The notes under the pieces: generated by a model
What the model saw: only the letters and a program-made list of their open reading frames with translations
Databases searched by the model: none
What the model was told of the DNA's origin: nothing
NCBI GenBank assembly: GCA_002104945.1
Contig: MCFH01000051.1
Coordinates: 1-64,000, forward strand
Length of the DNA stretch: 64,000 nt
Source: Piromyces finnis finn
Lineage: Eukaryota > Fungi > Neocallimastigomycota
Direction of reading: 5' to 3'
Made by a program: the position numbers and the translations under genes
In this document: piece after piece, positions 30,841-64,000 of the stretch
How the letters are laid out: each line of letters opens with the position of its first letter
Position numbering within the stretch: position 1 is the first letter of the stretch

Positions 30841-33282
30841 TTACATCTTTTCATGGAAGGTACGAGCAATAACTTCCTTTTGTTGTTGTGGTGTTAATTT
30901 TACAAAATTGACAGCATATCCAGAAACACGAATAGTTAAGTTTGGATAGTTTTCTGGATGAGCCATAGCATCTTCTAAGGTTTCACGTTTAAGAACATTA
31001 ACATTAAGATGATGGGCACCTTTGGTGAAGTATCCGTCTAGTAATCCTGAAAGATTACCTTGACGTTCTTTCAATGATTTACCAATGGTATTTGGAACAA
31101 TAGAGAATGTGTTTGAAATACCATCCATGCATGAATCGTAGTTAACCTTAGCAACGGATGAAAGAGAAGCAACAGCACCTGAAAATTCACGACCATGCAT
31201 TGGATTACAACCTGGAGCAAAAGCTTGACCTGCTTTACGACCATCTGGAGTAGAACCTGTTTTCTTACCATAAACAACATTGGAAGTAATTGTAAGGATA
31301 GAAAGGGTGTGAGTAGCATTACGGTAAGTTGGAGTCTTTCTGAGTTTGTTAATAAGCTTATCAGTGACAGTTTTGGCGAAATAATCAACACGATCATCAT
31401 CATTACCGAATTTTGGGAAGTCACCTTCAATCTTGAAGTCAACAGTTAAACCGGTCTTTGGATCACGAATTGGAGTGACCTTGGCATACTTAATTGCAGA
31501 GAAAGAGTCAGCAACAACAGAAAGACCAGCAACACCAAATGCCATAAGACGACGAACATCGGTGTCGTGAAGAGCCATTTGAAGTGATTCGTAGCAGTAT
31601 TGGTCATGAGAATAGTGAATAACATTCATGGTATTAACATAAAGCTTAGCAATCCAATCCATGGCTTTATCATAAGCTTCCCACATCCATTCAAATGGAA
31701 TTGGACCTTCTGGAACTGGTCCGAAATCTGGACCAACTTGCTTACCAGTTCTTTCATCTTTACCATGATTAAGAACATAAAGCATAAGTTTAGCGAGATT
31801 ACAACGAGCACCAAAGAATTGCATATCTTTACCAATTCTCATGGCAGAAACACAACAAGCAATTCCATAGTCATCTCCGAATCTAGCTGACATGAGAGCA
31901 TCGGATTCATATTGAATAGAAGAGGTATCGATAGAAACCTTGGTAGCGAAATCTTTAAAGTTTCTTGGAAGTGATTTATTCCAGAGAACAGTGATATTTG
32001 GTTCTGGAGCTGGTCCTAAATTATAAAGAGTATTAAGAATACGGAAGGAAGTCTTGGTGACTAAGGTACGACCATCTCTTCCCATACCACCAACTGACAT
32101 AGTAACCCAAGTTGGATCACCAGCAAATAAATCATTGTATTCTGGAGTACGTAAATGACGAGCAAAACGTAATTTTAAAATAAGATTATCAACGATTTCT
32201 TGAGCTTCGGATTCGGTGATGACTCCATTCTTTAAATCATTTTCAAAGAAGCAATCGAGGAAGGCATCAACACGACCAAGAGACATGGCAGCACCATCTT
32301 GTTCTTTGATTGAACCTAAGTAACCAAAATAGACAAATTGAGTGGCTTCTCTGGCATTTTTAGCTGGTTTAGAAATATCAATTCCATAAGATTTAGCCAT
32401 TTGAGTGAGCTGTTTAAGAGCCTTGATTTGGTCAGCAACTTCACCAATTAATTTCATGGTTGGTTCATCCATCAATTTCTTTTGTAATTCAACTCTATCC
32501 ATTTCTTTTTGAGCAATGAGACGGTCAGTACCGTAGAGAGCAACACGACGATAATCACCGATGATACGACCACGACCGTAACCATCCGGTAAACCTGTCA
32601 TAATAGCATTAGAACGTCCAGATCTCATTTCTTTAGAGTAAAGATCAAAGACAGCAGTGTTGTGAGTCTTACGATATTCTGAAAAAATGTGTTCAATATT
32701 TTCATCCATTGGAACATTAACAGCATTAAGAGCATTTTTAACCATGTTGACACCACCGAATGGTTTGATGGCTCTCTTCAATGGTTCGTCGGTTTGATAA
32801 CCGAAAATAACTTCATTTTCCTTGTCAAGGTAACCAGGTTTATGAGAAGTGATAGTTGATGGAGTATGTGGATCAACATCGTATAAACCGCCATTTTCAC
32901 GTTCTTTAGCTAAATATTCTTCAGCCTTTGCATAGAGCTTCTTTGTCTTATCGGTTGGACCAGCAAGGAAAGAACCATCACCTTCATATGGAGTGTAATG
33001 TTTCTTAATCCAACCTTCAACATCGATTTCGGTCTTTGAAGCAGCATCGCCGGTAATGGATGGAGCTTGAGTAGCGTATGTTTTAGTTTGAACAGATGAG
33101 AAAGTTGATTTTTTGGAACACTTATTCTTGAGACCAGAGGTAGTCATAATTGGAGTTGAAGTATGAAGAGCACGAGATGGTTTAGATAATCTAACACCAG
33201 CAATTTTTGTGGCAGAAACAGCATTAACTGGAACTGACTTAGCAATAGCGTTGTTAATTTGACATAAAGTTAAACTTTCCAT
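30841..33282 (-). CDS. PFL: Pyruvate formate-lyase with N-terminal organellar (hydrogenosomal) presequence, 813 aa, intronless
   Basis: Catalytic IACCVS, glycyl-radical loop [19 protein letters not shown] and QFFGAR. About 70-aa Ser/Thr/Lys/Arg-rich extension ending ...QTKTY|ATQ, resembling a mitochondrial-type presequence and the published hydrogenosomal PFL of anaerobic fungi (from memory, not searched). Confidence 0.97.
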
Positions 33283-35651
33283 TTTTAAACTGAGTATTGA
33301 TATATAGTTAATATTAGAGTATTTTAAAATTGATGAAGTAACTACGTAATATAGTAATATAGATTATGATTGATTATTTATTTACAATAAAATATAATAA
33401 ATATTTTAATTTATATAATTAATTTCTTTGGTTTATAATATTATTTATAATAAATAATGTTAAGAAATATAATATAATTTCTTAAATGTCGTTTTTTTAT
33501 ATATTTATATTAAAATTTGAATAGCTTATAATGTATAAAACTGATGAAGAAAAAAAAAAAAAGAAAATTTATTGATTTTTATAATAAAAATTTTTATGAT
33601 TTATAACTTTAATTAATAATATTAATTATATTATAAATATTATAAATATAAATACTGTTACACAGTATTGATTTACTATATTTTTAGGAAAACGATGCTA
33701 AATTTTTTTTTAATTTTTTTATTTTATAATATATTAATCTTTTTTTTAATTTAATAGATTAAATAGTAATATATTATTTAAATGTATAAAATAATATATT
33801 AAAAATAAAAATTTATAATTCAATATATGGATAATTTTCCTGTTAAAATTTATACCACACCAACAGTTTTATTCTATGCTTATTTAACCTAACAATTTAA
33901 TAATTAAAGAATCTAGTATTTAACAGCTCATTCTTTTATAATATAAAACTTTATAATACAAAGTTAATTTAAAATATTATTAAATTATCCTTTTTAGCTT
34001 GTTAATATAGTCATAGTCAATAATTTAATAATTTAACACTACTATTGAAATAAATACTATATATACATAATTCATTTTATTTTTACAAAAGATAATTAAA
34101 TGTAATAACATTAAATAAAATAATAAATACTTAGGTTTAGTTATAATTTTTTTATATATATTTATGAATGTATATGTACTTGTAACACTGTTGTATGTAA
34201 AATAGTTACATTATATTTACATAAAATATATGTACTTGTAATTAATCTTCCAAAATAAAATAATTTATTATAAATTTTGTAGGATATTTTAACGAAAAAT
34301 TTATTAACTATTAAATTTATATATATTATATATTACAATACAATCTATTAAATTAAAAAAATACTAATATTAATAAAATAAAAAATATATACATAAAAAG
34401 TGTGAAAAAAATATATTTTAACTACCTTTTCATCTTGATATAATTTTAATTTTAAGCGATAAACAATAAATAATAACTTTTTAGCATTAATTATTGAATA
34501 GAATAATAAATGTAAAATATAATAAAATTGAAGATTATTTACAAAGAATAATTAATAGTAAAAAATAACAATTAATAAAGCATCCTGTTATATAATTTTT
34601 CATAAATTTGATTCAATAGTTAAAATTTTTCATTATTTTTATTACTATATTCTAATAGATATACCTATGTAATTTAAAAAGGAAAATTAAATATTTTATT
34701 ATATATTCAAGATTTTTTTTAAATTTATGAGATAATATATTTATTATTAAATATTAAATATAACAAATAATAAATATAATTATAATAGTACAAATGAAAT
34801 ATTTTAGTTTTTATTTTTTTATGCCTTAAAAATTTATAATTCTTTTTTTTAGTTAAAGGGTTAAAAATATATTATTAAAATTTTAACATTTTAAATCCTA
34901 ACCCTCACTTATGTATAAATAATATAAATTGCTAAATAAAAAAAGTTTTTTTTTTTTTTTTTTTAACAATGCACTATTTTAATAAAATTTAACTTTTATA
35001 AATATATATTTATTTTTTAGAAAAAGAAGAGAATATACTTTTTTTATTTAATTTTTATTGGAAATAATTATATGTATAATAGGATAAAAAATAAATATAT
35101 ATAAAAGTAATATACTATATATTAGTAAAAATATGAGTTTCAACTTTAACTTTTATATTTTAGTGGACATCATACATCATGCCCGATAATACTTTCTAAA
35201 TTTATTTCATTTGATTTATTAAGTAGAAATAAAACTCACACAATATATATTACATATTACAAAGTTCATCAAACAGTTATACAACTTAAAAAAACTCATT
35301 TTATATATATATTTTTTTTATATATATATCTTAATTTTATATTTAGATAGTTCAATAACTTTTTATTACATACTTCTAATGTTTATTTAATCAAATTAAT
35401 AATTTATATTAAAAAATAATAAATCTATTATCTTTACTAATAAAAATTAATAACATAGTATAAAAAAGGTTTGCTTTACATTTTAGTCATATTATTTAAT
35501 ATTTCTTTTTAAAGTACTGATTTTTTTTTATTATATTTTTTTAAAAGAGAAAATAAAAGATATTTATTATTTTTATAATTTTATTTATACTTATTTTTTT
35601 ATATTTATTAATAATAAGTAGTATTAATGTTATTTTTTTATTATTATATGA

Positions 35652-36229
35652 TTTTTTTTAAAGGCATCAAATATTTTAAACTTTATTATTAATTAAAATT
35701 ATAATACATGTTATAAAAAAACAAAATTAAAAATAAAAAAAAATATGTTTAAATAAATACAAATGAATAAAAATTGGTATAATGTATTCTAGTAATTTTC
35801 ATTAAAGTATGAAAGCCATTATTATACTAAAATATAAAATTGTAGTTGACTTTCAATAGGATATCAAGCCAAAGATCAAAATTTTGTAATGAGACAAAAT
35901 TATGATCTCCATTGGTTGCGCTGGCCCTCCTGGCCTGTCTTACTGTTTCTTCAGCATTGACCCTCTTGGATGTTGCTTTAAACTTTTTGAATATTAACCA
36001 TTTCTAGCCAATAACAAAAATCATGATTTTGGTTAGAAGTTCCGCTGTTACGGTCAAGAATGGTGTTCCTTCGTAAGTGCTCGATTGAATCTGACACTTG
36101 CAAAGTTCTTTCCATTCCATTGAATTAGAATAATTGATATTATTAAAATTTCTTTCCTCAAGAAAGAATTTAAATATTTTATTACACACACTAGAATAAT
36201 CATACACATAAATATTCACACGATTATTA
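35652..36229 (-). mobile_element. 5'-truncated, degenerate copy of the 3' end of the non-LTR element at 42844-48420
   Basis: Aligns by eye, at roughly 85% identity, to 42890-43470 (3'UTR plus ORF C-terminus). Premature TAG at the IGQQW codon position and a short T-run remnant of the poly(A) tail at 35652-35659. Confidence 0.92.
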
Positions 36230-36797
36230 TATGATATCCATGGCATACATAACCATATTTATATAAATGATACAAATTATAAATTTATATGTAAATTCAT
36301 GTTTAAATTATAATATATTGTAAAATTAAGTATTAAATTTCATAATATTATTAACATAAATATTATTATAACTATAAATTATTTTTTTATATATATTAAT
36401 AGTATAGTAATAATGTTATTAAAGTATTACCAGAAGAAGAATGGTTCATTTATAACTTTTACAATTTTTGATATTTACAATATATTTATAATATTCTTAA
36501 TTATTATTTATTAATAATTAAACACAAGCATACACACACACAGAAATAATAAAAAAAAAAGTTTAAATTTAAATATATCTCTTTTGTATTATATATTTTT
36601 ATTTTATTACATTTATATATACTTTTTTTTGTAATAAATAAAAAAAAGATTATTTACATTAAAATAATAGAATAAATAAAATGATAGTATTTAATTAAAT
36701 ATATATATTTTTAAATTATTAATTATTGGTTATTGGTATATTTATTGATTGTTATATTTATTAGTCTACTTAAAATAAAAAGGTATTTAATTTATTT

Positions 36798-38999
36798 TTA
36801 AAGAGTTTCATGGAAAGTTCTGGCAATAACTTCTCTTTGTTGTTGTGGTGATAAACGAATAAAGTGAACTGCATATCCTGAAACACGAATGGTTAAGTTT
36901 GGATAGTTTTCGGGATGAATCATGGCATCTTCTAATGTTTCACGAACTAAAACATTAACATTTAGGTGGAATCCGCCTTGACTAAAGTAGCCATCTAATA
37001 ATCCTGTGAGATTAATAATACGTTCCTTTTCAATTTTACCTAACACGGTAGGAACAAATGTAAATGTATTGGAAATACCATCTTTACAATATTCATATTC
37101 AACTTTACTAACGGAATTGAGTGAAGCTACTGCTCCATTAGTTTCACGACCATGCATTGGATTACATCCTGGTGCAAATGCTTCTCCACTTTTACGTCCA
37201 TCAGGTGTGGATCCTGTCTTCTTACCATAAACAACATTAGATGTAATGGTTAAAATAGATAATGTATGTTCTGCTCCTCTGTATGCTGGATATTTCTTTA
37301 ATTTGCCAAGGAATATTTTAGGGAGTTCAATGGCAAATTGATCAACACGATCATCGTCATTTCCGAATTTGGGGAAATCGCCTTCTATTTTGAAGTCGGT
37401 AGTTAATCCTGTTTCAGGATTACGAATTGGAAATACTTTAGCATGCTTAATAGCTGAGAATGAATCAACAATGACAGAGAAACCTGCAATACCAAATGCC
37501 ATGTAACGATGAACATTTGTATCATGTAATGCCATTTGAACAGCTTCATAGCAATATCTATCATGAGAATAGTGAATGGTGTTCATGGTGTTGACATAAA
37601 GACATGCAATCCAATCCATTGCTTTATCATAAATTTCCCATGCTGATTCGAAATTAATAGATCCATCTTCATTTAATTTGATATCTCCGAAATCTGGTCC
37701 GACTTGCTTTTCTGTTCTTTCATCATAACCATGATTGAAAGCATAAAGTAAAAGTTTGGCCAAGTTGCAACGAGCTCCGAAGAATTGCATATCTTTTCCA
37801 ATTCTCATTTGTGAAACGCAACAGGCAATTGCATAGTCATCTCCAAACATGTCGTTCATGAGATTGTCATTTTCATATTGAATGGATGAAGTATCAATTG
37901 AAATTTTGTTACAGAAATTTTTGAAAGGTGTTGGAAGTTTATTATTCCATAAAACGGTGATATTTGGTTCAGGAGCTGCTCCAAGAGTTCTGAGAGTATT
38001 AACAATACGATAAGAAGTTTTACTAACTAATGGTCTTCCATCTATTCCCATACCACCAACAACCATGGTAACCCATGTTGGATCACCGGCAAATAAGTCG
38101 TTGTATTCAGGAGTACGTAAATGACGAACTAATCTAAGTTTGATGATTAATTGATCGATTAAATCTTGAGCTTCTGCTTCCGTTAAAATTCCTTTCTTCA
38201 TATCATTTTCGATGTATACATCGAAGAAACAATCAACACGACCAAAAGACATGGCTGCTCCATCTTGATCCTTAACACTAGCAAGATAGCCAAAGTAAGT
38301 GTATTGAATGGCTTCTTTAGCATTTGTAGCTGGCTTAGAAATATCAAATCCATATCTTTGACCAAGACCTTTTAATTCGTTGAGAGCTCTGATTTGTTCT
38401 GAAATTTCTTCTCTTGTACGCATACTTTCTTCTGTCATGGTGATTCCAAGAGAAAGTTTATCTTGTTGTTTCCATTCGATTAATTGATCAACACCGTATA
38501 AAGCAACACGACGGTAATCACCAATGATACGACCACGACCATATCCATCTGGTAAACCTGTGAGAATAGCATTAGATCTTGCTTTTCTCATTTCTGGAGT
38601 GTAAAGATCAAAGACACAATCATTGTGAGTTTTACGATATTTGAATATCTCTTCAACAGAAGGATCAATATTACGATCATAAGCTTTTAAAGCATTCTTG
38701 ACAACACGAACACCACCGAATGGCTTAATAGAACGCTTGAGAGGTGCATCAGTTTGTAAACCAACAATATCTTCTTTTTCTTTTATAATATAACCAGCTT
38801 CATGAGAATTAACTGTTGAGATAGTTTTGTTATCAACATCGAGACAGCCATTACTTTTTATTTCTTCAACACGGAGTTCACAACATTTAGCCCATACATC
38901 CTTAGCATTTTGAGATGCTTCAGTTACGAGGAATGAAGCATCACCTTCATATGGAGTGTAATTTTCTTTAATCCACTTGGCAACGTCAATAACTTGCAT
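36798..38999 (-). CDS. PFL: Pyruvate formate-lyase without presequence (putative cytosolic), copy 1, 733 aa, intronless
   Basis: [25 protein letters not shown] and QFFGAR intact. Starts directly at [20 protein letters not shown] with no targeting extension. Confidence 0.96.
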
Positions 39000-39459
39000 T
39001 TTGATAATTTATTAATTCTTTTAAAAATGTAATTTATAAATAAAAATGAAAAATTCTATACTATTCTTTAATGATATTTAACAGTTATTATAATTATTAA
39101 AATTGTTTTATTATTATTTATATTATTATTAATATTAGTATAATATATATTTTTTTTAATTATTAAAGGTATATAATATTTTTTATTGAAAAGAAAAATA
39201 TTTTAAATTTTAAAAATCTTTAATAAACTTTCTTATTAAAATTTAATATTTAAATTGCTAATGAATAATAAAAAATTTTTTGAGAAATTTTTTTCTTTTA
39301 TATTGATTTTTAAATAAATAAAAATTTATAAATCTAATATATTAGTTTATAATTTAATATATAAAAATTTATTAAAAATAATATATTTTGTCATACCTTT
39401 TTAAATAAAAAATAAAAATAAAAAATTTTATTAATGAAAATTGAACGATAAATTTTTGC

Positions 39460-39973
39460 TAAAACAACCGAAAAAAAAAACTTTAAATCTAGGGAGAATT
39501 TTCTATATTTAATTTTAATCTTTTTGAATATTTCAAATAACTATATTAATTATTTTACAGAATTAAGTATTAAACAGAATTAAATATTAATATAAATAAA
39601 TTAACTCAAAAATGCATGGCGTTTTATTATTATTTAATATTTTTCAAATATTCAAACAATTACTTTCATTATTATAATTGAAATTATTTTAATCTACTTC
39701 TTATAAACATCAAAGTATTAAAGAATTAAGCAATAAAAGAGCATATAATTAATAAAAAAATTAAAATATAAAATATTTATTTAAAGTGTCAATAAGTAAA
39801 ATTTAATTTTTCCAGTATAAGGTCCTATAAAAAATATTTTTGCAATCGTAAAAAATTCCATTAAATTTAATATAAGGGTTAGTTTATTGAATATTAAAAA
39901 ATAGTTATTAATGTAAATTATTCCTGTGTTTCCTGTGTTTCAAAATAAAGTTTTCTATAATTTTGGCTATTTC
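39460..39973. promoter_or_regulatory. Unique spacer at the centre of the divergent PFL pair (probable shared upstream control region)
   Basis: Lies between head-to-head PFL starts (38999 and 40435). Contains a tandem TTCCTGTGT x2 at 39921-39941. Function inferred from position only. Confidence 0.45.
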
Positions 39974-40434
39974 GCAAAAATTTATCGTTCAATTTTCATT
40001 AATAAAATTTTTTATTTTTATTTTTTATTTAAAAAGGTATGACAAAATATATTATTTTTAATAAATTTTTATATATTAAATTATAAACTAATATATTAGA
40101 TTTATAAATTTTTATTTATTTAAAAATCAATATAAAAGAAAAAAAATTTCTCAAAAAATTTTTTATTATTCATTATCAATTTAAATATTAAATTTTAATA
40201 AGAAAGTTTATTAAAGATTTTTAAAATTTAAAATATTTTTCTTTTCAATAAAAAATATTATATACCTTTAATAATTAAAAAAAATATATATTATACTAAT
40301 ATTAATAATAATATAAATAATAATAAAACAATTTTAATAATTATAATAACTGTTAAATATCATTAAAGAATAGTATAGAATTTTTCATTTTTATTTATAA
40401 ATTACATTTTTAAAAGAATTAATAAATTATCAAA

Positions 40435-42636
40435 ATGCAAGTTATTGACGTTGCCAAGTGGATTAAAGAAAATTACACTCCATATGAAGGTGATGCTTCA
40501 TTCCTCGTAACTGAAGCATCTCAAAATGCTAAGGATGTATGGGCTAAATGTTGTGAACTCCGTGTTGAAGAAATAAAAAGTAATGGCTGTCTCGATGTTG
40601 ATAACAAAACTATCTCAACAGTTAATTCTCATGAAGCTGGTTATATTATAAAAGAAAAAGAAGATATTGTTGGTTTACAAACTGATGCACCTCTCAAGCG
40701 TTCTATTAAGCCATTCGGTGGTGTTCGTGTTGTCAAGAATGCTTTAAAAGCTTATGATCGTAATATTGATCCTTCTGTTGAAGAGATATTCAAATATCGT
40801 AAAACTCACAATGATTGTGTCTTTGATCTTTACACTCCAGAAATGAGAAAAGCAAGATCTAATGCTATTCTCACAGGTTTACCAGATGGATATGGTCGTG
40901 GTCGTATCATTGGTGATTACCGTCGTGTTGCTTTATACGGTGTTGATCAATTAATCGAATGGAAACAACAAGATAAACTTTCTCTTGGAATCACCATGAC
41001 AGAAGAAAGTATGCGTACAAGAGAAGAAATTTCAGAACAAATCAGAGCTCTCAACGAATTAAAAGGTCTTGGTCAAAGATATGGATTTGATATTTCTAAG
41101 CCAGCTACAAATGCTAAAGAAGCCATTCAATACACTTACTTTGGCTATCTCGCTAGTGTTAAGGATCAAGATGGAGCAGCCATGTCTTTTGGTCGTGTTG
41201 ATTGTTTCTTTGATGTATACATCGAAAATGATATGAAGAAAGGAATTTTAACAGAAGCAGAAGCTCAAGATTTAATCGATCAATTAATCATCAAACTTAG
41301 ATTAGTTCGTCATTTACGTACTCCTGAATACAACGACTTATTTGCCGGTGATCCAACATGGGTTACCATGGTTGTTGGTGGTATGGGAATAGATGAAAGA
41401 CCATTAGTTAGTAAAACTTCTTATCGTATTGTTAATACTCTCAGAACTCTTGGAGCAGCTCCTGAACCAAATATCACCGTTTTATGGAATAATAAACTTC
41501 CAACACCTTTCAAAAATTTCTGTAACAAAATTTCAATTGATACTTCATCCATTCAATATGAAAATGACAATCTCATGAACGACATGTTTGGAGATGACTA
41601 TGCAATTGCCTGTTGTGTTTCACAGATGAGAATTGGAAAAGATATGCAATTCTTCGGAGCTCGTTGCAACTTGGCCAAACTTTTACTTTATGCTTTCAAT
41701 CATGGTTATGATGAAAGAACAGAAAAGCAAGTCGGACCAGATTTCGGAGATATCAAATTAAATGAAGATGGATCTGTTAATTTCGAATCAGCATGGGAAA
41801 TTTATGATAAAGCAATGGATTGGATTGCATGTCTTTATGTCAACACCATGAACACCATTCACTATTCTCATGATAGATATTGCTATGAAGCTGTTCAAAT
41901 GGCATTACACGATACAAATGTTCATCGTTACATGGCATTTGGTATTGCAGGTTTCTCTGTCATTGTTGATTCATTCTCAGCTATTAAGCATGCTAAAGTA
42001 TTTCCAATTCGTAATCCTGAAACAGGATTAACTACCGACTTCAAAATTGAAGGCGATTTCCCCAAATTCGGAAATGACGATGATCGTGTTGATCAATTTG
42101 CCATTGAACTCCCTAAAATATTCCTTGGTAAATTAAAGAAATATCCAGCATACAGAGGAGCAGAACATACATTATCTATTTTAACCATTACATCTAATGT
42201 TGTTTATGGTAAGAAGACAGGATCCACACCTGATGGACGTAAAAGTGGAGAAGCATTTGCACCAGGATGTAATCCAATGCATGGTCGTGAAACTAATGGA
42301 GCAGTAGCTTCACTCAATTCCGTTAGTAAAGTTGAATATGAATATTGTAAAGATGGTATTTCCAATACATTTACATTTGTTCCTACCGTGTTAGGTAAAA
42401 TTGAAAAGGAACGTATTATTAATCTCACAGGATTATTAGATGGCTACTTTAGTCAAGGCGGATTCCACCTAAATGTTAATGTTTTAGTTCGTGAAACATT
42501 AGAAGATGCCATGATTCATCCCGAAAACTATCCAAACTTAACCATTCGTGTTTCAGGATATGCAGTTCACTTTATTCGTTTATCACCACAACAACAAAGA
42601 GAAGTTATTGCCAGAACTTTCCATGAAACTCTTTAA
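40435..42636 (+). CDS. PFL: Pyruvate formate-lyase without presequence (putative cytosolic), copy 2, 733 aa, intronless
   Basis: Same motifs as copy 1. Differs by two amino acids (GIDGRP/GIDERP, DGSINF/DGSVNF). Confidence 0.96.
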
Positions 42637-42841
42637 AAATAAATTAAATACCTTTTTATTTTAAAAAGAATAATAAATATAACAATCAATAAATATACCG
42701 AAATATATACCAATAATACATTAATAATAATAATTAATTAACTATTTCAAAAATATATAATTTTAATTTTTAATTTAAAACTATCATTTCATTTATTTTA
42801 ATATTATAATGTAAATAACCATTTTTTAATAATTAAGGAAT

Positions 42842-42843
<2 letters not shown>

Positions 42844-42898
<55 letters not shown>

Positions 42899-45800
42899 GG
42901 CATCAAATATTTTAAACTTTATTATTAATTTAATTAAAATTATAATACATTTAACATAAAAAATTAAAAATAAAAATAAAAAAAAATATGTTTAATTAAA
43001 CACAAATGAATAAAAATTGGGTATAATGTATTCTAGTAATTTTAATTAAAGTAAGAAAGCCACTATCATACTAAAATATAATAATTGTATTTGACTTCCA
43101 ATGGGACACCGAGCCAAAGATCAAAATTTTATCATGGGACAAAATTATGATCTCCATTGGTTGCGCTGGCCCTCCTGGCCTGTCTTACTGTTTCTTCAGC
43201 ATTGACGCTCTTGGATGTTGCTTCAAACCTTTTGAACATTGACCATTGCTGGCCAATAGCAAAAGGCATGATTTTGGTTAGAAGTTCCGCGGTTACCGTC
43301 AAGAATGGTGTTCCTTCATTAGTACCAGATTGAATCTGACGCTTACAAAGTTCTTTCCATTCCCTTGAATTGTAATTGATATTGTTAAAACTTCTTCCCC
43401 CAAGAAGGAATTTAAATATTTTACTGCACACACTAGAATAATCATACACATTAATATTCACCGGATTATTAGAACTATTACTATCATTAACTAAATTACT
43501 ATCTAAATTAGAATTATTATCTTCACTATTGTTATCATTACTAATATTATTATTTCTATTACTACTATTGTTATTATTACTATTGTTACTATTACTATTG
43601 TTAATACTACTATTGTTACTATTACTATTAATGTTATTGCTATCTCTACTGATATTAACATTTTCATTATTATTGATAGGACTATTGGAATTACGTTGAC
43701 TGAAAAAATTTAATAGATGGACTATGGAATCATAATGTTTAATACGGATATCTCTAAATGTTGGACAATCTAATAACCAATGTTTAATACTTTGATCTCC
43801 ACACTTGCAACATGGACAGTAGTTAGGACAAACTGGATCAACAAATTTAGCAGCTTTGGCAACTCTAGCATCCAACTTGTATCCGTTTCTTGCTTTCAAT
43901 AGCCAGTAGAAGCCATAGGCAAACTCTGGGTACTCATAACATAATTTAATAAAATCTTTAGTTTCAATAAATTTATTATCATCATAATATTGCGCTTTGA
44001 TTGAATTCCCTTTGAGATCTTTCCAATAAAAGTTTTTAACTGCTTTAACATCTCCATGCTTCTTTAATTTTTTATCAAGTGTCCTACTTGATTTGCACCA
44101 CGTGTATTTTCTAAATTTAGGAATGTAATTGACAAGGTGTGAGATAATACAACTTGAGTTTTTCCATTTGTTAAAACATCTAACCTGAGCTAACGCACAT
44201 TTGGCTGACAATGGAGGAATATTCAAATCTTTTGAGATAGAGTATAAAGATATAAACGATACAGCTTTATGAACTCCGGCAATCCATCGTATTCCTTTGT
44301 TAACATGCTTCTGAGCAATCCTAGACCTAGCTTTGTTGGATCCAAGTAATGGTGCAAAGTATGAAACTCTGCTAATCACTTGTGAGTTAAGTACTAGTTT
44401 TTTGAAAGGAATAGGAATATTAGGATTTCTTAAGAATTTACTGACTGAGAAAAGCCCTTTCAAAACCTTGTTATTGAGAGTTTTAATTACTGGTTTAAGG
44501 GACAGATTCTTATCAAATGGAACACCAAGATAAGTATAACAATCAGTAGTTGGAATGGGTTGTCCTGCTAAGTAAAATGTTGGATCTCTCTTGTTCTGAT
44601 TTTCTATTGATTCAGGACGAATCACCATCGTTGAACACTTCTGGATACCAAATTCCATTTCATTATACAAGGCCCATTCATTAACTCTTCTAAGCATCTT
44701 TTTTAAGTATCCTCTTGTTGGAGCACAAATAACTATATCATCTGCAAAAAGTCCACCACAGCATCGAGTGTCACCTAAACTGACTCCTAGATCTTCACAC
44801 TCTTTAAATATATCATTAATAAAGAGATTAAGGAGAATAGGAGAAAGAGGGCAACCTTGACGGACTCCTTTCTTCACATCAAAAGATTTCGAGAATTGTC
44901 CATTTAATTTGACATTAGCCTTAGATGTTAAATATAAATTTTTGATGAATTGTAAACTCTTACCTCGGATTCCTAAACAATCTAATTTATGGAGAATATT
45001 ACCGATTGGGACTGAATCGTATGCTTTCCTGAGATCTAAAAAGGCCAAATATGTCTCTTTATTATCTAATTGACGTCTACGGCATATTTCTTGGATTGAA
45101 ATGAAAAGACTGATACTTTCTTCCTTTTTTCGAAAACCAAATTGTTCAGGTCTAATGAAATTATTCTTTAAACCATATTCTGAGATTCTAGTGGTGACAA
45201 TTTTGGAAATCAACTTAATACCATTATTGATAAGTGATATACCTCGATAGTTATCACAATCTGTCAAATCTCCCTTCTTAGGAATAGAAACAATACTGGA
45301 TTCATTCCATGAGTTGGGGAAGTCTCCATCCCAAATACGGTTAAATAATTTAAGAATAAAATTTAAACCATGAGCGTCATTATCTGAAGTGGTATTACCG
45401 GAAGAATTATTATCTGTAGCATTATTAGAATCATTACTTGATGGAATTAATGCTTTGTAAAATTCAATTGGAATACCATCCGGACCTGATGCTTTATAAT
45501 TCGGAGTAGAGAGGATAGCTGACTTGACTTCATCAATACTAATATCTTGGTTGATATCCCACTCATCAAGCATAAGAAGTGAAAAACGTTTATTCGTTGG
45601 TTCTTCATACCAATGCTCCAAATCAAGACTTACACCACTTGGATCTGATGCAAGGTTTTCGAAATGATCATGCCACACTTCAAGTTGTTCTTCCGTAGCA
45701 ACAACTAATTCTCCATTTTTGTTTTTAATTGGTTGAGCAATAAAGAAAGAATCTTTTCCAATTTTTGCAGTTTTCTTGATCCATTTCCAGGCCTTCTTAG

Positions 45801-48420
45801 GATTATGACTCTTCATATACTCACATCCTGTTTTAATCCAATGAAGATATTCTTGCTTCCTAAATTCATTACATCTTTTGTGGATGTAATCAATGAGCTT
45901 ACGGTAGATTTTAATTCTTTTAATAAATTCATCTATATCATAAATTCTTTCTTTTTTAAATCTCTTATACAACTTCATTTTGATTTTTTGGAGATTAAAA
46001 ATTTGTTGTGAAATATGAAATGAAGACTTTATAACATTATTTGCTGAGGTAATACTGAGCTCGTCTGCAATTGAAAAAGCAGTTGAAGTAAATTCTTTGG
46101 AAAGTTCATCTGTAGAAACATTAGGATCGTTGAATTTTGCTGAAAGTATTTGGAATTTATTATGACTGAGAATAGATTCCTTTTCCTCAATACATTTTAA
46201 TCTATTCCATTTCAGAATTTTCTTAGGAACGTTAAAGTCATTAGAAAAATCTTCCATAGGAATAATTTTACCATTAATAAGAAGTGGCTTATGGTCTGAT
46301 ACTGGATAAAAATTATTTATAAATGATCCTGAGTGAATAAGATCTTTCATCTTCGAATTGATAAGAGCATGGTCAATGTCGGAAGATTGTTCACCTCGAG
46401 TCCAAGAGATAGTAGACCCTCTAAGCGGAAGAATTTCCCAATCTCCTAATCCATTAGTTGATAACCAGTTGGATAATTTTACTTTAGACATATTAAAATC
46501 ACCAACAAGAATCGATGGATGGGATGAATGAGTTTGTAACCACAAGCGAACTTCTAACTTTGCATGATCAACATAGATGTTGTGATGACTATGAGGCATA
46601 TAAACATTTCCAATCGAGCATTTGAATCTATTCCAGAGACTAAAAGTATAAATAGAAATAATATACTTTCCAGAGAAGTTTTCAAGTGAGGCTTGACACG
46701 AATTGTGAAAACCTAAATATAAACCTCTCATTCCAGGAACTGATTCGTCAGCTTTCTTGAAAAAGTGTCTATAGTTTCGCAAAGTAACACGACAAGGATA
46801 ATCTGTATTCGATCCAGAACCATTACCAGTTTCTTGGAAACATAAGAATAATGGTTTGAAAATAGCTGTGAAATAGCTAATACTATCTCTCTTTTCATGA
46901 TTCCACCCATTGGTGTTCCAACTAAGACAAAAAGAAAAGTTATCAGGCTTGTTGGATGAGGAAGAATCGTTGCTATTATTATTATTATCAAGGTCATCAT
47001 TATTAATGGATGATGCATCAGAGGAATAAGTAGAACTATTACTAGATGGCTGTGAAACTGAAGAACTATCAACTATTGAACTGTTAGCAGAGTTGATAGA
47101 GCTATTAGAATTAATTGTTGAATGTTGAGATTGAAATTGTGTTTGCTGTAGATCTGGAATATTTTCATGATTGGAAACTTGTTGAAGATCTTGTTGAAGA
47201 TCTTGTTGAAGATCGGATTGTTGATGAGATTGTTGAACTGATTGTTGAAATGATTGTTGAATAGAATGTTGATGTTTATTAGAAACTAAAATTTTACGTT
47301 TGAGAGTGGAAAAAGTGTATTTGTGATTCCTTCTACTACGAGCTGAAAAGGAAATTGAGGTAACTGAAAGTTTCTTCTTTAACATGTGTAAGATTTTAAT
47401 ACAATCTTTTGATGAACCATGAACCTTGACTAAGAAAAAGTGATCATTAAAAGTTTGAAAATATTTAACACTAATAACTGAATTAAATTTATCTTCTAGA
47501 ATAACCTCGAGTTTTTCCCATAGCATATTTACTGACCATGATCGAATACCACGGATAAAGAAGGAGCGAATATCATCTAAGGGGATACCATAAGACCGGG
47601 TACCACGTCTGATATAATTCTTATCTTTAATATAAAGGACTGACATGATAATAAATTCTAATTAAAAAATATTGAATATAAAATAAATACTAATAAAAAT
47701 TACAAATATAACGTATATGGAAAAAAATCTGTCTCTCTCTCTCTTCTTAAAAGTACTGGATAGTACAAAAATTGTTACGATGCTTTGTTTAAAGTTTCTT
47801 TTTTTTGAATTCTAGTTGTAAATTTTCTTTAAAAATTCTAGTTTTGGTTTGTTGTTAGTAAATTCGATTCGCTTTTTGACACTAAAATTGTTTGACTTTA
47901 CTTTTCATTAAATATTTAAATTGGTAAAAAATTTGAATCAAGAATGTCGACACCAGAAAGCTTGTGAATAGTATTTTTACATGATGTAGAGTGAATCAGT
48001 CTCTTACAAGAAACAATACAACAATAGCTACATGAATATAAAAATACAATGCAAATGCTAAAGTTGACTACATTGGATTCTTACAAGAGAAGAGTAGTAC
48101 TACATGAATACATGAATAAAAGAAAAAAATACAGCAACAAAATGTATTACTCTTCTAATTAAATACTATACAAACTTACCTGAGTATCAAACATTCAACT
48201 TATTCATCAAATACTTAAATTCGATGAATAAAATGTTTTTTAATCGCTCAGTACCATGAGCTTAGTCCTAATAATTTTCCCTTAAAGACTAACCAAGCAT
48301 CCATTGCGCAATGCTTGGATTTAATTCTTTCTACTCTCTCAGTACCATGAGCATGAGTAGACCCCCTTGATAAACTACATTTATTAAATAAATGAAAGCA
48401 CGTTCCCAAGAGGGAAATAT
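42844..48420 (-). mobile_element. Apparently full-length non-LTR retrotransposon (LINE), single ORF, poly(A)-tailed
   Basis: 52-nt T run at 42844-42895 (poly(A) on the minus strand), ~235-nt 3'UTR and an intact 1504-aa ORF. The GC-richer structured leader ends near 48420, where composition returns to extreme AT. The 5' boundary is inferred and no convincing TSD was found. Confidence 0.9.
43132..47646 (-). CDS. Non-LTR retrotransposon polyprotein: RRM-like / APE endonuclease / reverse transcriptase / CCHC knuckle
   Basis: APE motifs SWNTNG, CFQET, ILVGDFN, DIDHAL and SDHKPL. RT motifs KASGPDG, NYRGISL, QFGFR, FLDLRKAYDSV, GVRQGCPLSP, LFADD and YTYLG. C-terminal C-x2-C-x8-H-x4-C (CPCCKCGDQSIKHWLLDC). 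No RNase H recognised. Confidence 0.96.
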   Translation of the reverse strand: MSVLYIKDKNYIRRGTRSYGIPLDDIRSFFIRGIRSWSVNMLWEKLEVILEDKFNSVISVKYFQTFNDHFFLVKVHGSSKDCIKILHMLKKKLSVTSISFSARSRRNHKYTFSTLKRKILVSNKHQHSIQQSFQQSVQQSHQQSDLQQDLQQDLQQVSNHENIPDLQQTQFQSQHSTINSNSSINSANSSIVDSSSVSQPSSNSSTYSSDASSINNDDLDNNNNSNDSSSSNKPDNFSFCLSWNTNGWNHEKRDSISYFTAIFKPLFLCFQETGNGSGSNTDYPCRVTLRNYRHFFKKADESVPGMRGLYLGFHNSCQASLENFSGKYIISIYTFSLWNRFKCSIGNVYMPHSHHNIYVDHAKLEVRLWLQTHSSHPSILVGDFNMSKVKLSNWLSTNGLGDWEILPLRGSTISWTRGEQSSDIDHALINSKMKDLIHSGSFINNFYPVSDHKPLLINGKIIPMEDFSNDFNVPKKILKWNRLKCIEEKESILSHNKFQILSAKFNDPNVSTDELSKEFTSTAFSIADELSITSANNVIKSSFHISQQIFNLQKIKMKLYKRFKKERIYDIDEFIKRIKIYRKLIDYIHKRCNEFRKQEYLHWIKTGCEYMKSHNPKKAWKWIKKTAKIGKDSFFIAQPIKNKNGELVVATEEQLEVWHDHFENLASDPSGVSLDLEHWYEEPTNKRFSLLMLDEWDINQDISIDEVKSAILSTPNYKASGPDGIPIEFYKALIPSSNDSNNATDNNSSGNTTSDNDAHGLNFILKLFNRIWDGDFPNSWNESSIVSIPKKGDLTDCDNYRGISLINNGIKLISKIVTTRISEYGLKNNFIRPEQFGFRKKEESISLFISIQEICRRRQLDNKETYLAFLDLRKAYDSVPIGNILHKLDCLGIRGKSLQFIKNLYLTSKANVKLNGQFSKSFDVKKGVRQGCPLSPILLNLFINDIFKECEDLGVSLGDTRCCGGLFADDIVICAPTRGYLKKMLRRVNEWALYNEMEFGIQKCSTMVIRPESIENQNKRDPTFYLAGQPIPTTDCYTYLGVPFDKNLSLKPVIKTLNNKVLKGLFSVSKFLRNPNIPIPFKKLVLNSQVISRVSYFAPLLGSNKARSRIAQKHVNKGIRWIAGVHKAVSFISLYSISKDLNIPPLSAKCALAQVRCFNKWKNSSCIISHLVNYIPKFRKYTWCKSSRTLDKKLKKHGDVKAVKNFYWKDLKGNSIKAQYYDDNKFIETKDFIKLCYEYPEFAYGFYWLLKARNGYKLDARVAKAAKFVDPVCPNYCPCCKCGDQSIKHWLLDCPTFRDIRIKHYDSIVHLLNFFSQRNSNSPINNNENVNISRDSNNINSNSNNSSINNSNSNNSNNNNSSNRNNNISNDNNSEDNNSNLDSNLVNDSNSSNNPVNINVYDYSSVCSKIFKFLLGGRSFNNINYNSREWKELCKRQIQSGTNEGTPFLTVTAELLTKIMPFAIGQQWSMFKRFEATSKSVNAEETVRQARRASATNGDHNFVP

Positions 48421-55674: not shown

Positions 55675-57780
55675 TTAAGATAAATTATCATTTAAATAAT
55701 CCGTGAAAAGTTCTGCAACCTTATTCAAACTTAATGATGTAAATGTTTTATTGATATTAATAAATTGACGTTTTAATTTACGTAATTCACTTAAAGTAAT
55801 AGATCTAGATGGGACATTTAAGTAGATATTTGAGAATTAAAACATAAATAATAAAAAAAAAAAGATTAAGGATTAATAGTTTTTGTTAACATATATTCAT
55901 AGAATTATAGAAATTAATTTATTATAATTATAATTTCTAAATATGAAAAAGGATATTTTTTTATCACAATTTGGAACTTTGGTTTCACCAAATTGACCAT
56001 TCTTTTGTGCTTCAACAACAACATTTGTAATGGTTTGAGTAATTTTATCTAATTTATATAAATAATTGGTTTCTTGTGGCTTTTTCTATTTATTATTAAT
56101 ATCATTAATAATAATAATATATAATTAATAGTGTGATTTTTTTTAAAACATTTATAAAGCATTATTTTCTTTTTTTATCTAGCGTATTAAGTTTATCAAT
56201 GACTTACAGAAATAGTTGAAAGATTTGGTGGTGGTGCTTTTCTTAAAATTAAAGCATCAACAATATTTTGAGCAAAATCTTCTATATTATCGTTTGGTAA
56301 AAGAGTAAAAAGAGGAGAATCCCATCTATTTCTTGAATCTGGTTCTTCAAATCTTGTAATTAAATTTTCAAACCTTTTTTTTTTTTTGAATGGAAATGAA
56401 TTAAACATAACGTAACATAAATATATTTATAATTATAAATAATAGATATAAATAATTATATAATTAATTGTTTATTCAATTTATGCTGCACGATAAAATA
56501 TATGTTAATTAAATAAATTCTTTAAAAGTAAAATTGCATTATGTTTTTGATTAATTTATGATATCAATAATTTATTATAATAATCAAATATTTAAATATA
56601 CTTGAATATACTCGATAAGATTTAAAAAGGTATTGAAATTTTTTATATATTTAAAATTTAAATTAATAATTTCTAATCATTCAAAATCTACTTTTGATAT
56701 GATGATATCTATGAGTTATAAAATAATTATTGAATATGATATATTGTATTTATCTTTAATTATTGTTGTTGTTATAACGATAATAGAATGAATTTATTTT
56801 CGTCTCCTTCATTTATGTTTTTACTCTTTTTTTTTTTTTTTTCTGATTATGTCTTGAATCGGTAAATCAATCTTAACAATAAAGAATTTATAAATTTAAT
56901 GAAAGAATATTAATTATTAATAAATAAATAAATACATTTCTGGATCGTATTTTTCTTCTTCCTTTCTGTTATTATGCCATTCTCTTGCTTGTTGAATTGG
57001 AATAGCAGCATGTACCTTTAAAAAAATAATAAATGTCATGATTATATATTAAAATTTCAAATTATATACATATATATATTTAAAAAAAAAATGGAAATAA
57101 TGAATATATTGTTATAATATAATTTGAAATAAAATAAAATAAAATAAAATTGAATCCTTACTATACAATGAGGTGTTCTTAGTTGTTTTGCTAAACAATA
57201 TAATTGATATCTAAAACCTTTAATATAATTCATAGCATCGGCAATAACAATAGTATCTTTATTTAAAAGACGTTCAACAGATGACATAAGCATTGAACGT
57301 GCTTTTTTTTCTTCATTAATGGCTATAACACATTAATAAATTTTAATTGTTATCATTATTGTAATTTATATATATATAATATATAAAATAATGTTATGTT
57401 TTATCAATGAAACTGAATTTTTATAAAATTTATTTTTCTTCTAAAAAAAAATACAAATATATAAAATAGCACTGAATAAAAAATTATATATATATAATAT
57501 TTTTATTTTATTTACATGAAAAAGTATTAATTCTGTCTAAACCAAAGCTATCGTCGTTAAGTAGATGAACAACTCTTGGTTCTTTTAATAATTTAACTAC
57601 TTTTTCTTTAGGTTTTGGTGGTTCTACACTTTCTGTATTTTCAGTAGAATTTTTTTTGGAACTCTTTTCATTTTCATTACTAATTTCTGAAGGACAATAA
57701 GTTTCCATAATTTTTTTCAATTCATTTGCTCTTTTAGTTTTTCCACTACATGGAAGTCCACAAATAATAATTAATGGCAT
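55675..57780 (-). CDS. KTI12: Elongator-associated ATPase Kti12, multi-exon
   Basis: MPLIIICGLPCSGKTKRA (P-loop), IADAMNYIKGFRYQLYC, FENLITRFEEPDSRNRWDSPLF, and a C-terminal ITLSELRKLKRQFININK; stop at 55675-55677. Confidence 0.93.
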
Positions 57781-58188
57781 TTTTTATTATTATAATGTTA
57801 TATTTTATGAATAAATAAAATTAAAAAAAAAGGTTTTTTTTAAAAAAAAAAATTTAAAAAATTTGAAAATCTATTGGACAAAACAAATCAACATTTAAAT
57901 TAAAATAAAAAAAAAAAATACTTTAATAAATGACTAAATCTAATGAAGAATTGAATATTTTTTATTATAAATAATGTTATTAATAGTAATAGTAAATCCT
58001 ATTTTAATACATTAATATGACTATGAGCATTATATATTATATTTTTTTCATTATAAGCAAAAAAAAAAAAATAATCACAATAATATAAAAAAATATTATT
58101 TGTGAGGTTAGAAGGTTAGAATAAGAAATTTTAAAAATTTTCACTACCATAAAGGTTATGTTATTTTAATTTTTATATCAAAGTTAAA

Positions 58189-58288
58189 CATTCTTTTTTT
58201 TATAAAAAAAAATAATAATGAATTTCTTAAATATATATCATTCTTTTTTTTATAAAAAAAAATAATAATGAATTTCTTAAATATATAT
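58189..58288. repeat. Perfect 50-bp tandem duplication
   Basis: cattcttttttttataaaaaaaaataataatgaatttcttaaatatatat at 58189-58238 and again at 58239-58288. Confidence 0.9.
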
Positions 58289-58861
58289 AAGTTAAATATA
58301 AATAATAAAATAAATTATTTTTACATAATTTTATTGTTATCATTATTATATTTTAAATGAGCTTTTATTTATTATAATTTTATATTTTTTTAAAGTTGAA
58401 ATATAGTTAATTAAAACTATATAAAAAAATATATCTTTTTAAAATTAAAACTATTATAAAAAAAAGTTATAAATAATATAAAAATTTATAACAAATAAAA
58501 AAAAATAAAATAAAATTCTTATAATTATTAGATCTAAAATAAAAATAAAATAATATTTAAATTCTTTGATAGTCATTTTATTTATTTGTTAATACACAAA
58601 TATATTTATTGTGGTAACAATAAATTTAATTACTGGTTATCGTTATCTATAAAATAAAAAAGTTAATAATGTATTACAATATATATAACCTTATGGATAA
58701 TACATAAAATATTTAAAGACATATTTATTATTAAAATTAATTAATTAATTAATTATTATTAACTTTAATTTTTATTTCTATTTTATAAGTATTTTTTAAA
58801 ATTTAAAAATTTATAATAGTTTATAAATAAATTTTATTTTAAAGATATTATATATATTAAA

Positions 58862-59807
58862 ATGTTTTATCCAAACGCTCCACTTTCAAAAATTATGTTT
58901 AATAAATATGATACTGATGGAAGTGGCAGTATCACTGTACAAGAATTTAAATATATGGCATATGATTTAGGTTATTATCTTTCTGATACTGAACTTGAAT
59001 TTGCTGTAAAGAAGCTTGACAAGACTGGTTCTGATTCCATTACTTATGATGATTGTAATTAATAAATAGTGATAAAAATACATTATAAATATTAATTAAT
59101 ATTTATTTTTGAAACTATATATAAGAATTATTATCTTTTTTTTTTTTTTTTTTTTTTAAAATAATGAATATATATATATTAGAATCAAAAGAATAAGAAT
59201 TTAATTAACAAATTTATGAATTATATTTAATTATTTATTCACACTTTTTTTTTTTATTATTATCATTATTTGAAATTGATTAAAATTATCATATTTAAAT
59301 ATAAAGTCAAGAAATGGTGGGGAACAACTGATCGTTGGAATCAACTTAAATTATCAGAAGAAAATATGGCTATTCTTTCTGCTATTAGTGGTCAATTTCA
59401 AATGTTTGACGTAGACAAGAGTGGTTCAATTGACAAACACGTAAATATTTGTTTATATATATAAATATATATCTAAGAATTCATTTTGCTAAATTCTATG
59501 AATAATTTTTAGGAATTCCAAAATTATTGTAAGGAAATTGCCAAAAAGGGAAAAATTACTACTGCAGAAGAAGAAGAGATGTTTAGAAATTTAGATATTA
59601 ATCATGATGGAAATGTTTCATTCAATGAACGTAAGAAGTTAATAAATTAATTATTATTATAAAGACTCAAAAAATTAATTAATTAATTATTATTATTATT
59701 ATTTATTTATTAAATAAATATATAAATATTTATTTTTTAAAATTCATTTAGTTATTGATTATCTTTATGCTAAATATGAAGGTGACCTTTCAAGATATTT
59801 TTCATAA
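58862..59807 (+). CDS. Calmodulin-like four-EF-hand Ca2+-binding protein, 4 exons
   Basis: EF loops DTDGSGSITVQE, DKTGSDSITYDD (degenerate), DVDKSGSIDKHE and DINHDGNVSFNE. Exons join in frame to TAA at 59805-59807. Not canonical calmodulin. Confidence 0.88.
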
Positions 59808-62325: not shown

Positions 62326-62481
62326 ATAAACATAATAAACATAATAAACATAATAAACATAATAAACATAATAAACATAATAAACATAATAATAATAATA
62401 ATAATAATAAACATAATAAACATAATAAACATAATAATAATAATAATAATAAACATAATAATAATAATAATAATAATAAAC

Positions 62482-62532
<51 letters not shown>
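62326..62532. repeat. Compound microsatellite (AATAAACAT)n/(AAT)n
   Basis: 9-bp cataataaa units interleaved with aat runs; explains the spurious ORFs 62241..62549 and 62316..62612. Confidence 0.95.
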
Positions 62533-64000
62533 GAAAGTGGTTTAATTGAATTAATATAATTAATATACATAATTTTTCTTATAAAAGTTTTTTTTAATTC
62601 TAAATAGTACAAGTATTCAACATTAATATATAAAAAATAATAAACTAAGTTCGTTGTAAAATAAATTAATAGTTTAGCACTTAAAACTTTAAACTTTTTA
62701 TACTTTAGTATAAAATAGGAAATTTTTTTTTTTATGTTTCAGGTAGATATTAAATAATATCAGTTAAAGAAATAGATGCCAAATTTAGTAACAATAAAGA
62801 AAACTAATTAAAGGATATTAGTATACTTTAGAAAAAATTAGAAAAAGAGTAGTGGACTCTTTTCTTCTTCTATATCTTATTAGTATTGATTAATGCTTAA
62901 TTTACAAAAATTTAAAATATAATTATATGTGAATAATATTACTAGTAGTTCGTAAATAATTTTTAATATATCTTTTTAGTTAATTTTATTATAATGGATA
63001 AATGACAACATACAAATAATAATAAACATCACTTTTATGTCTTTCATATAATATATTATAGTTTTATATATTATAATGATGGCTAAATCAATAATACTAA
63101 ATTGAAAATATAAAAAATGATATATATTTAAATATTAAATTTTATTTTTATTGTATATATTGAAAAACAAGTTAATATAATATCATAACAATTTAAGTCT
63201 TTTCATTTTGATAAATTCATAAGTAACTATTATTTACATGTGGTCATATATATATTATCATTATCTAGAAGGCTTTTTTCATAGTATTTATATTTGTCTT
63301 TATCCTATGTTTTCCTTTTTTAACTCCATTTTTTTTGGCGTATAAACCATGGTATCTTAATTAACTATTTATATAATCTTGTGATATAAATAATATAAAT
63401 ATTATAATTACTGATATATATATATTGACATGAACAAAGAAGGTAATAATTGTTTTAACAATTGTTATAATTTTTTTATTAAAAATTGTATTATTCTTTT
63501 AAATTTAAAAAAAATTTAATAATAAATTGTATTTTATATTAATTTTTTCCTTTTTTCCTTTATTTATTTCTTTTTTTTTATTGGCCAAAGCAAATTAACC
63601 TCCATATATTATTTTAATTTTAATATATTTTACAAATTGAAAAATGCATTTATCAATAATTTTTTGTTTATATCAACAGAAAAAGAAAAGTAAAATTTAA
63701 TAATTATAAAATTGAATTTATTAAAAAAGAATAAAATGTATATGAAAAAGGGGAAATTATAATGATCTTTTATGGCAATGTAATAAACAAAATATAGAAA
63801 GTAAATAATTAATATTATCATTGCCATAATTATATAAAAATAATTTTAAAATATTAATGTTTATTATTAATAATGAAGTTTATTGAAGTATACTATTATT
63901 CTTTTTATTATTATTTTATTAATATTTATTGATATATAAATTTTTAATATATATATTAATAAAAACAGTCAACAAAATAAAGTAAAATAAATACAAAAAG

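Follow-up and report, generated by a model that had tools for sequence, protein, structure and literature searches.

Near-identical pyruvate formate-lyase genes in a head-to-head palindrome of Piromyces finnis: probable concerted evolution of the arms by gene conversion

Two genes for pyruvate formate-lyase (PFL) lie head-to-head in the genome of the anaerobic gut fungus Piromyces finnis finn, as the near-identical arms of a small palindrome with diverged flanks on both sides, and the question raised by this locus is how the two arms have stayed so alike. The palindrome is contained in a 64,000-nucleotide stretch of DNA (positions 1 to 64,000 of the forward strand of contig MCFH01000051.1, NCBI GenBank assembly GCA_002104945.1), which is called the window below and corresponds to C180:1-64000 in the contig numbering used here. 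The source assembly has 232 contigs, which total 56,455,805 bases. AT content is very high throughout the window (14-33% GC across 2-kb windows), and the palindrome sits 36.7 kb inside its 401,682-bp contig. The evidence presented here indicates that the locus is probably an old head-to-head inverted PFL duplication, the arms of which have evolved in concert by repeated arm-to-arm gene conversion.

The extent of the palindrome was determined with a repeat search, which returned an inverted repeat at 36735-39327 and 40107-42699 with an inner continuation at 39270-39463 and 39970-40163. Exact global alignment then placed the arms (2,729 bp) at 36735-39463 on the minus strand and 39970-42699 on the plus strand, with a spacer of 506 bp between them (39464-39969, 16.6% GC). 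The initial annotation of this DNA had described facing arms of about 2.69 kb around a 514-bp spacer; an arm of 2,694 bp is obtained when the palindrome is bounded at its positions 36770 and 42664, and its description agreed with the exact alignment apart from the size of the spacer. Each arm is composed of 465 bp of upstream DNA next to the spacer, the coding sequence (CDS) of a short-form PFL (36798-38999 in the left arm and 40435-42636 in the right arm), and approximately 64 bp of 3' untranslated region (UTR). The spacer is unique and asymmetric. No mirror symmetry was detected inside it (score of 38 compared with 34 +/- 5 for shuffled sequences), and a scan of the spacer for tRNAs, Rfam families, and meaningful open reading frames (ORFs) returned just two junk ORFs of less than 40 aa. 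An inverted microhomology of 8-9 bp, AAAACTTT, is located about 15 bp inside each end of the spacer.

The two genes are intronless and intact, and each encodes 733 aa. Both copies matched the domains PF02901 (PFL-like, E values of 3e-196 to 3e-195) and PF01228 (Gly_radical, E value of 2e-36), and alignment with a long form of the enzyme revealed that both have kept the adjacent cysteines (IACCVS) and the glycyl-radical motif (RVSGYAV), which we take, from what is known of E. coli PflB, to serve catalysis. On the basis of both domains and both motifs, the pair is predicted to be pyruvate formate-lyase, a glycyl radical enzyme, and the short form, which has no N-terminal extension, is presumably the cytosolic PFL. 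The ratio of non-synonymous to synonymous divergence (dN/dS) between the copies was approximately 0.07; since both reading frames also retain the Cys-Cys pair and RVSGYAV, both copies are under purifying selection.

The arms differ at exactly ten CDS positions, all of them substitutions (eight synonymous and two non-synonymous), which in the right arm are 41151, 41211, 41253, 41396, 41616, 41625, 41776, 41910, 42048, and 42129. This is the number, the kind, and almost the range (about 41150 to 42130) that had been counted by eye. The non-synonymous changes are G321E in the right copy and V448I in the left copy. All ten fall within a central island of 979 bp (41151-42129 on the plus strand, mirrored at 37305-38283), a degree of clustering with a span-test probability of 0.004 within the CDS and 0.0007 within the arm. 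At the density of the island, the remaining 1,716 bp of the arm should contain 17.5 differences, and two were observed (Poisson P = 4e-6 for two or fewer). In the 465 bp of non-coding upstream DNA, where few changes had also been noticed by eye, the arms differ by a single substitution and a 1-bp indel. Synonymous divergence (dS) between the arms was 0.017 overall, 0.041 in the island, and 0 elsewhere. A share of eight synonymous changes in ten has a probability of 4e-4 under random errors, and the differences are therefore considered to be biological and filtered by selection rather than sequencing noise.

A second PFL palindrome was identified on contig C164, with arms at 57555-60312 and 60919-63677 that are 99.82% identical overall and identical across the CDS, and with a spacer of 606 bp. 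When the C164 palindrome was aligned with the window in reverse orientation, the match was unbroken through both inner arm junctions, which are the same to the nucleotide, and the two spacers were homologous over their full length save for a 100-bp indel. Across the genome the spacer sequence occurs in two places, the window and the C164 palindrome, and the upstream arm segment in four places only. Because the junctions are shared and these segments occur nowhere else, the palindrome was evidently passed on as one unit rather than formed on two occasions. Around the two palindromes the DNA is not collinear: just gene-sized units (a long-form PFL gene, the palindrome, and a LINE) match, in a different order and orientation. 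The window and C164 regions are consequently regarded as paralogous loci. The possibility that the C164 region is a haplotig or re-assembly of the window was considered and rejected, as the matching units are reordered and the DNA between them is unrelated.

The four arms were compared site by site across the CDS. Sites were designated AABB when the loci differ and both arms of each locus agree, and ABAB or ABBA when an arm pairs with one arm of the other locus. This comparison yielded 16 AABB sites, six sites at which only the left window arm differs, four at which only the right window arm differs, no ABAB or ABBA site, and no site private to a C164 arm; five additional AABB sites are present upstream, together with a block in the 3' UTR. 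The direction of change was assigned with four outgroups, namely a paralogue of 83% identity and three metagenomic relatives. The metagenome scan provided fungal contigs of 1.8-5.7 kb only, and their homology to the window ends 15-40 bp upstream of the ATG. Seven derived states were common to both window arms and six to both C164 arms. Two of those in the window arms are clear at the protein level: N658K and T32A, the latter at a position where all other PFLs in the comparison with a residue there, bacterial enzymes among them, have T. The loci stood 0.035-0.039 apart in synonymous divergence, against 0.017 for the two window arms and 0 for the pair on C164, and a maximum-likelihood tree joined the window arms with 80-85% support. 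The initial annotation had named paralogs closer within a species than between species as a test of its reading. That comparison was made here within one genome, against the C164 palindrome, and the arms were closer within each locus than to the matching arms of the other palindrome. Independent evolution of the arms after the palindrome had been copied would leave single-arm differences only, so this pattern points to conversion within each locus.

Divergence changes abruptly at the outer ends of the arms. Beyond the stop codon, the first differences between the window arms are substitutions at +29, +30, and +34, after which the sequences are identical to +64 and indel-ridden from there on; by eye, identity had been seen to drop about 28 bp past the stops. 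The diverged 3' flanks of the left copy (36600-36734, minus strand) and of the right copy (42700-42835, plus strand) are older homology outside the homogenised arm. Homology between the two sides was traced to about +195 to +200 (36600/42835), with 75% identity over about 195 nt. The right flank matched the flank of a truncated fifth short-form copy on C164 with 153 bits, that of the left arm with 142 bits (E value of 2e-33), and that of the C164 left arm with 108 bits, whereas unrelated AT-rich DNA anywhere in the 56-Mb genome reached 72 bits at best, so that the indel-ridden homology noticed by eye out to about 36650/42820 is real. Beyond +200, or across the retroelement insertion that borders the right flank, a search for homology gave only low-complexity noise, with about 60% identity in every register and on both strands.

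Between +65 and +200, substitutions at ungapped columns separate the window flanks by 18.5%, and indels are numerous besides; the upstream arm DNA diverges by 0.2%, so that divergence rises approximately 90-fold at the outer boundary of the arm. The flanks have a GC content of 7-9% and the upstream arm DNA one of 8%; since both are equally AT-rich, the jump cannot be put down to composition. The left flank most resembles that of the truncated copy at C164:1240-1442, diverging from it by 6.5%, and a tree of the flanks, with the topology ((left arm, C164 partial copy), right arm, C164 left arm), disagrees with the tree of the arms. Both the jump in divergence and this conflict are as predicted for a converted core tract within an older duplication.

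An old inverted duplication kept homogeneous by arm-to-arm conversion is the reading that the initial annotation had put forward, and the AABB pattern, the derived states shared by both arms, and the discordant flank tree all speak for it. Its term "ancient" can be kept in a restricted sense: the flanks are about 18% diverged in substitutions, and the word means no more than that. In the mechanism proposed, a double-strand break within one arm would be repaired from the other arm, by which changes would be erased or copied across, and a crossover between the inverted arms would flip the spacer and delete no copy, which would leave a stable pair. Conversion would reach across the CDS together with the 465 bp upstream of it and some 64 bp of the 3' UTR, halting on the inside at the unique spacer and on the outside within the 3' UTR, beyond which the original homology would have decayed. 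The latest tracts would have taken in 1.18 kb of the arm next to the spacer and 0.53 kb at its distal end, leaving the 1-kb stretch with the ten differences between them; the central island is, in these terms, the stretch outside the latest conversion tracts. Three of the derived states common to both window arms (41568, 41865, and 42078) lie inside the island, which indicates that it too was homogenised after the loci split and that the ten differences have gathered since. Since a sexual cycle is unconfirmed in these fungi, conversion was presumably mitotic. Both PFL copies are probably expressed.

Other features of the single-arm differences were recorded. At 41396 (codon 321), the change G321E is restricted to the right copy, and Gly is kept in 22 of the 24 PFLs compared, which came from fungi, bacteria, and protists; perhaps G321E is mildly deleterious, and conversion has so far neither erased nor spread it. 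Along the gene, the arm that carries the change alternates in blocks (LL RRRR LLLL, with a probability of about 0.05 in a runs test counted by hand), an order that could have come from a swapped segment or from two separate tracts. The odd arm has the outgroup state at three single-arm sites (41151, 41211, and 41616); by a rough estimate, 1.5-2 such sites are expected from chance reversal, and reticulation is not claimed from a count so near the chance expectation.

Several points weigh against conversion as the explanation, or limit the case for it. All of the evidence comes from one long-read assembly of one isolate of P. finnis. Consensus polishing can falsely homogenise near-identical repeats and may have inflated the identity of the arms, above all that of the identical C164 arms. 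With the nearest outgroup at a distance of 11-17%, the clade of window arms has no more than moderate support. Finally, the flanks of the two palindromes are just 73-83% alike, a divergence too great for telling which flanks are orthologous and hence for reading a spacer flip-flop between the two loci. The arm-spacer-arm unit must therefore also have moved from locus to locus, and the history must have been reticulate, with no simple two-step account.

The divergence between the two spacers is uneven. To the left of the 100-bp indel (39464-39645, 182 bp), 11 substitutions separate the window from C164:60313-60918, seven of them in the last 54 bp, and to the right of it (39646-39969, 324 bp), as well as in the next 150 bp of the arm, there is no substitution. 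This suggests a recent inter-locus conversion tract ending at the indel.

The genome contains three PFL palindromes in all. The third, also head-to-head, is on contig C175 (148347-151436 and 152608-155699), has arms that are 99.6% identical and encode the long form of 820 aa, and has a spacer of 1171 bp. A third, direct copy is located 23 kb away (C175:125702-129104) and shares 447 bp of upstream DNA, which runs into the spacer beside one arm. This direct copy suggests how such palindromes are born.

Conversion was weighed against three other explanations. The one that survives best, itself unlikely, is that both the window and the C164 palindromes arose recently and independently, from fold-back replication errors at the same upstream hot spot with no conversion, and that the AABB sites record the divergence of two single-copy progenitors. 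The C175 palindrome looks like a fresh product of this kind, given that the upstream homology of the third copy runs 447 bp into its spacer, and the inverted microhomology inside both ends of the window spacer would suit a fold-back origin. The same junctions would, however, have to be produced twice, to the nucleotide. Independent fold-back also leaves unexplained the significant diverged homology for about 130 bp past the outer ends of both arms, the concentration of ten differences in a 1-kb island against two in 1.7 kb of arm (P = 4e-6), and the fact that the left flank is closest to that of the truncated C164 copy.

An artefact of assembly or polishing is very improbable. Chimeric fold-back reads, redundant re-assembly, or the assignment of reads to the wrong member of a set of near-identical copies might be suspected, as the window and the C164 region are both near contig starts and the truncated fifth copy lies exactly at the start of contig C164, a sign that the assembler struggled with this gene family. 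Fold-back chimeras, however, give no spacer and sit at contig ends, whereas the palindrome has a unique 506-bp spacer and is 36.7 kb inside its contig, and the same architecture is found at two loci with non-collinear surroundings. Errors in raw long reads are expected to be indels, unlike the CDS differences between the arms, which are all substitutions and synonymous in eight cases of ten (P = 4e-4). A simple assembly artefact had been argued against from the substitutions and the unique spacer, and the position inside the contig, the second locus, and the synonymous bias strengthen that argument.

The least probable alternative, which the initial annotation had itself listed and which is given hardly any weight, is that the duplication is recent, that its 3' flanks have since changed quickly through microsatellite-like slippage so that its age is overstated, and that there was little or no conversion; many of the flank differences are indeed indels in simple AT repeats, but the upstream arm DNA (465 bp, 8% GC) has one substitution and one indel against 18.5% substitutions in the flanks, and the AABB pattern across two palindromes would still need conversion.

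The arms of primate sex-chromosome palindromes range from about 9 kb to 1.45 Mb, in contrast to the arms of 2.7 kb in P. finnis, which hold one gene each, are not on a sex chromosome, and have a second locus taking part. The likeness lies in the gene-bearing, near-identical inverted arms around a unique spacer: PMC6790999 describes primate arms of more than 99% identity that arm-to-arm conversion maintains in DNA where allelic recombination is slight or absent. The comparison with Y-chromosome palindromes that had been drawn for this locus is apt, the same kind of arm-to-arm conversion being proposed on a smaller scale. Closest of all are the palindromic pairs Amy-p/Amy-d and Hsp70Aa/Ab of Drosophila, small inverted pairs of a heavily used enzyme or stress gene in which paralogues are more alike than orthologues, the core evolves in concert, and the flanks evolve independently (reviewed in PMC3924832, with reference to Hickey 1991, Shibata and Yamazaki 1995, and Bettencourt and Feder 2002). 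Crossover between these inverted pairs inverts the spacer and deletes no copy (PMC3924832). The P. finnis palindrome likewise is a small inverted pair of a highly used gene with a homogenised core and diverged flanks. It differs from the Drosophila pairs in that the homogenised tract includes 465 bp of promoter-side DNA, that the test was made on paralogous palindromes within one genome rather than on orthologues between species, and that the host is an anaerobic gut fungus without a demonstrated sexual cycle, in which conversion would be mitotic. Experimental confirmation of a sexual cycle is missing for anaerobic gut fungi, as are genetic tools (PMC6883316). A gene palindrome homogenised by conversion is thus already known elsewhere, in Drosophila Amy and Hsp70 and on sex chromosomes, and PFL of P. 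finnis adds a case. No description of PFL genes arranged as palindromes and no report of gene conversion or palindromes in anaerobic fungi were found in the literature searched.

If conversion is the explanation, homologous repair between short inverted repeats would be acting over evolutionary time in Neocallimastigomycota, which would bear on how the extremely AT-rich genomes of gut fungi keep multi-copy metabolic genes intact. It would also matter for genome engineering by homologous recombination, for annotation, and for expression studies: the five near-identical short-form PFL genes of this genome are indistinguishable by short reads save for the few variants listed here, and the identity of paralogues in the P. 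finnis genome would be unusable for dating duplications. A wider and more tentative proposal is that small head-to-head gene palindromes might be a general way for anaerobic gut fungi to amplify heavily used genes, and that, in a lineage without demonstrated sex, errors might be corrected and copies homogenised chiefly by mitotic conversion, both between arms and between loci. Such an arrangement is possible rather than likely; if true, it would give these fungi an equivalent of the Y-chromosome solution.

The PFL family of the genome was surveyed with a six-frame search. At least 15 uninterrupted PFL genes were found, plus a contig filled with fragments (C44). Five near-identical short-form copies share 99-100% nucleotide identity: the two in the window, the two in the C164 palindrome, and the truncated fifth at C164:1-1442. 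Further copies of lower identity are a short form at C164:14598 (83% nucleotide identity) and a copy on C209 (74% nucleotide identity to the short form). Among the long forms, which are extended at the N-terminus by about 80 aa, are copies on C57, C1, C173, and C154 that are 83-91% alike and three on C175 that have 99.9-100% nucleotide identity. The window itself contains a neighbouring family member of this type, a gene of 813 aa on the minus strand at 30841-33282 with an extension of about 80 aa, which is 68% identical to the short form and the CDS of which is 99.7% identical to C164:5132-7573. Homogeneity among PFL copies is thus a local matter; homogenisation of the whole PFL family across the genome was ruled out, as the long-form copies on other contigs are just 83-91% alike. 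A doubled dosage of the putative cytosolic PFL, which had been attributed to the palindrome, does not describe a genome in which the short form alone has five near-identical copies and PFL genes number at least 15. The enzyme of anaerobic fungi was treated by Akhmanova et al. 1999 (cited in PMC7142291), and PFL 1 and PFL 2 are included in the N. lanati model (PMC8561657). It is highly expressed, takes most of the pyruvate flux, and is found both with and without an N-terminal extension. The P. finnis genes belong to the same enzyme family, with short and long forms, and differ in their copy number of at least 15.

Observations were also made on individual family members. Contig C44 (28,038 bp) contains PFL fragments on both strands, many with in-frame stops, that are 40-80% identical to the short form, and it looks like a graveyard of PFL pseudogenes. 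The paralogue at C209:161966-164149 encodes 760 aa, is 74-76% identical to the short form, and begins with the N-terminus MANKSSIDRIRAIYQHL, which looks like a PTS2 peroxisomal signal. In the 83% short-form paralogue at C164:14598-16799, which the public annotation gives as 733 aa, the frame is open and starts with IIVIDVAKW, with no ATG where the other copies start; it may start at a codon other than ATG or within a short exon further upstream.

Outside the palindrome, a full-length non-LTR retroelement occupies 42841-48414 on the minus strand and contains an ORF of 1504 aa (43132-47646) with an RVT_1 domain. Its poly(A), present as a T run at 42841-42898 (about 58 nt), abuts the right flank. 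Two tandem copies at C164:17867-28870 share 98.2% identity with the element. A 5'-truncated copy of 88% identity is located to the left of the palindrome at 35633-36229, in the same orientation, and a unit of about 115 bp from the 5' end of the element is repeated three times at C164:17615-17981.

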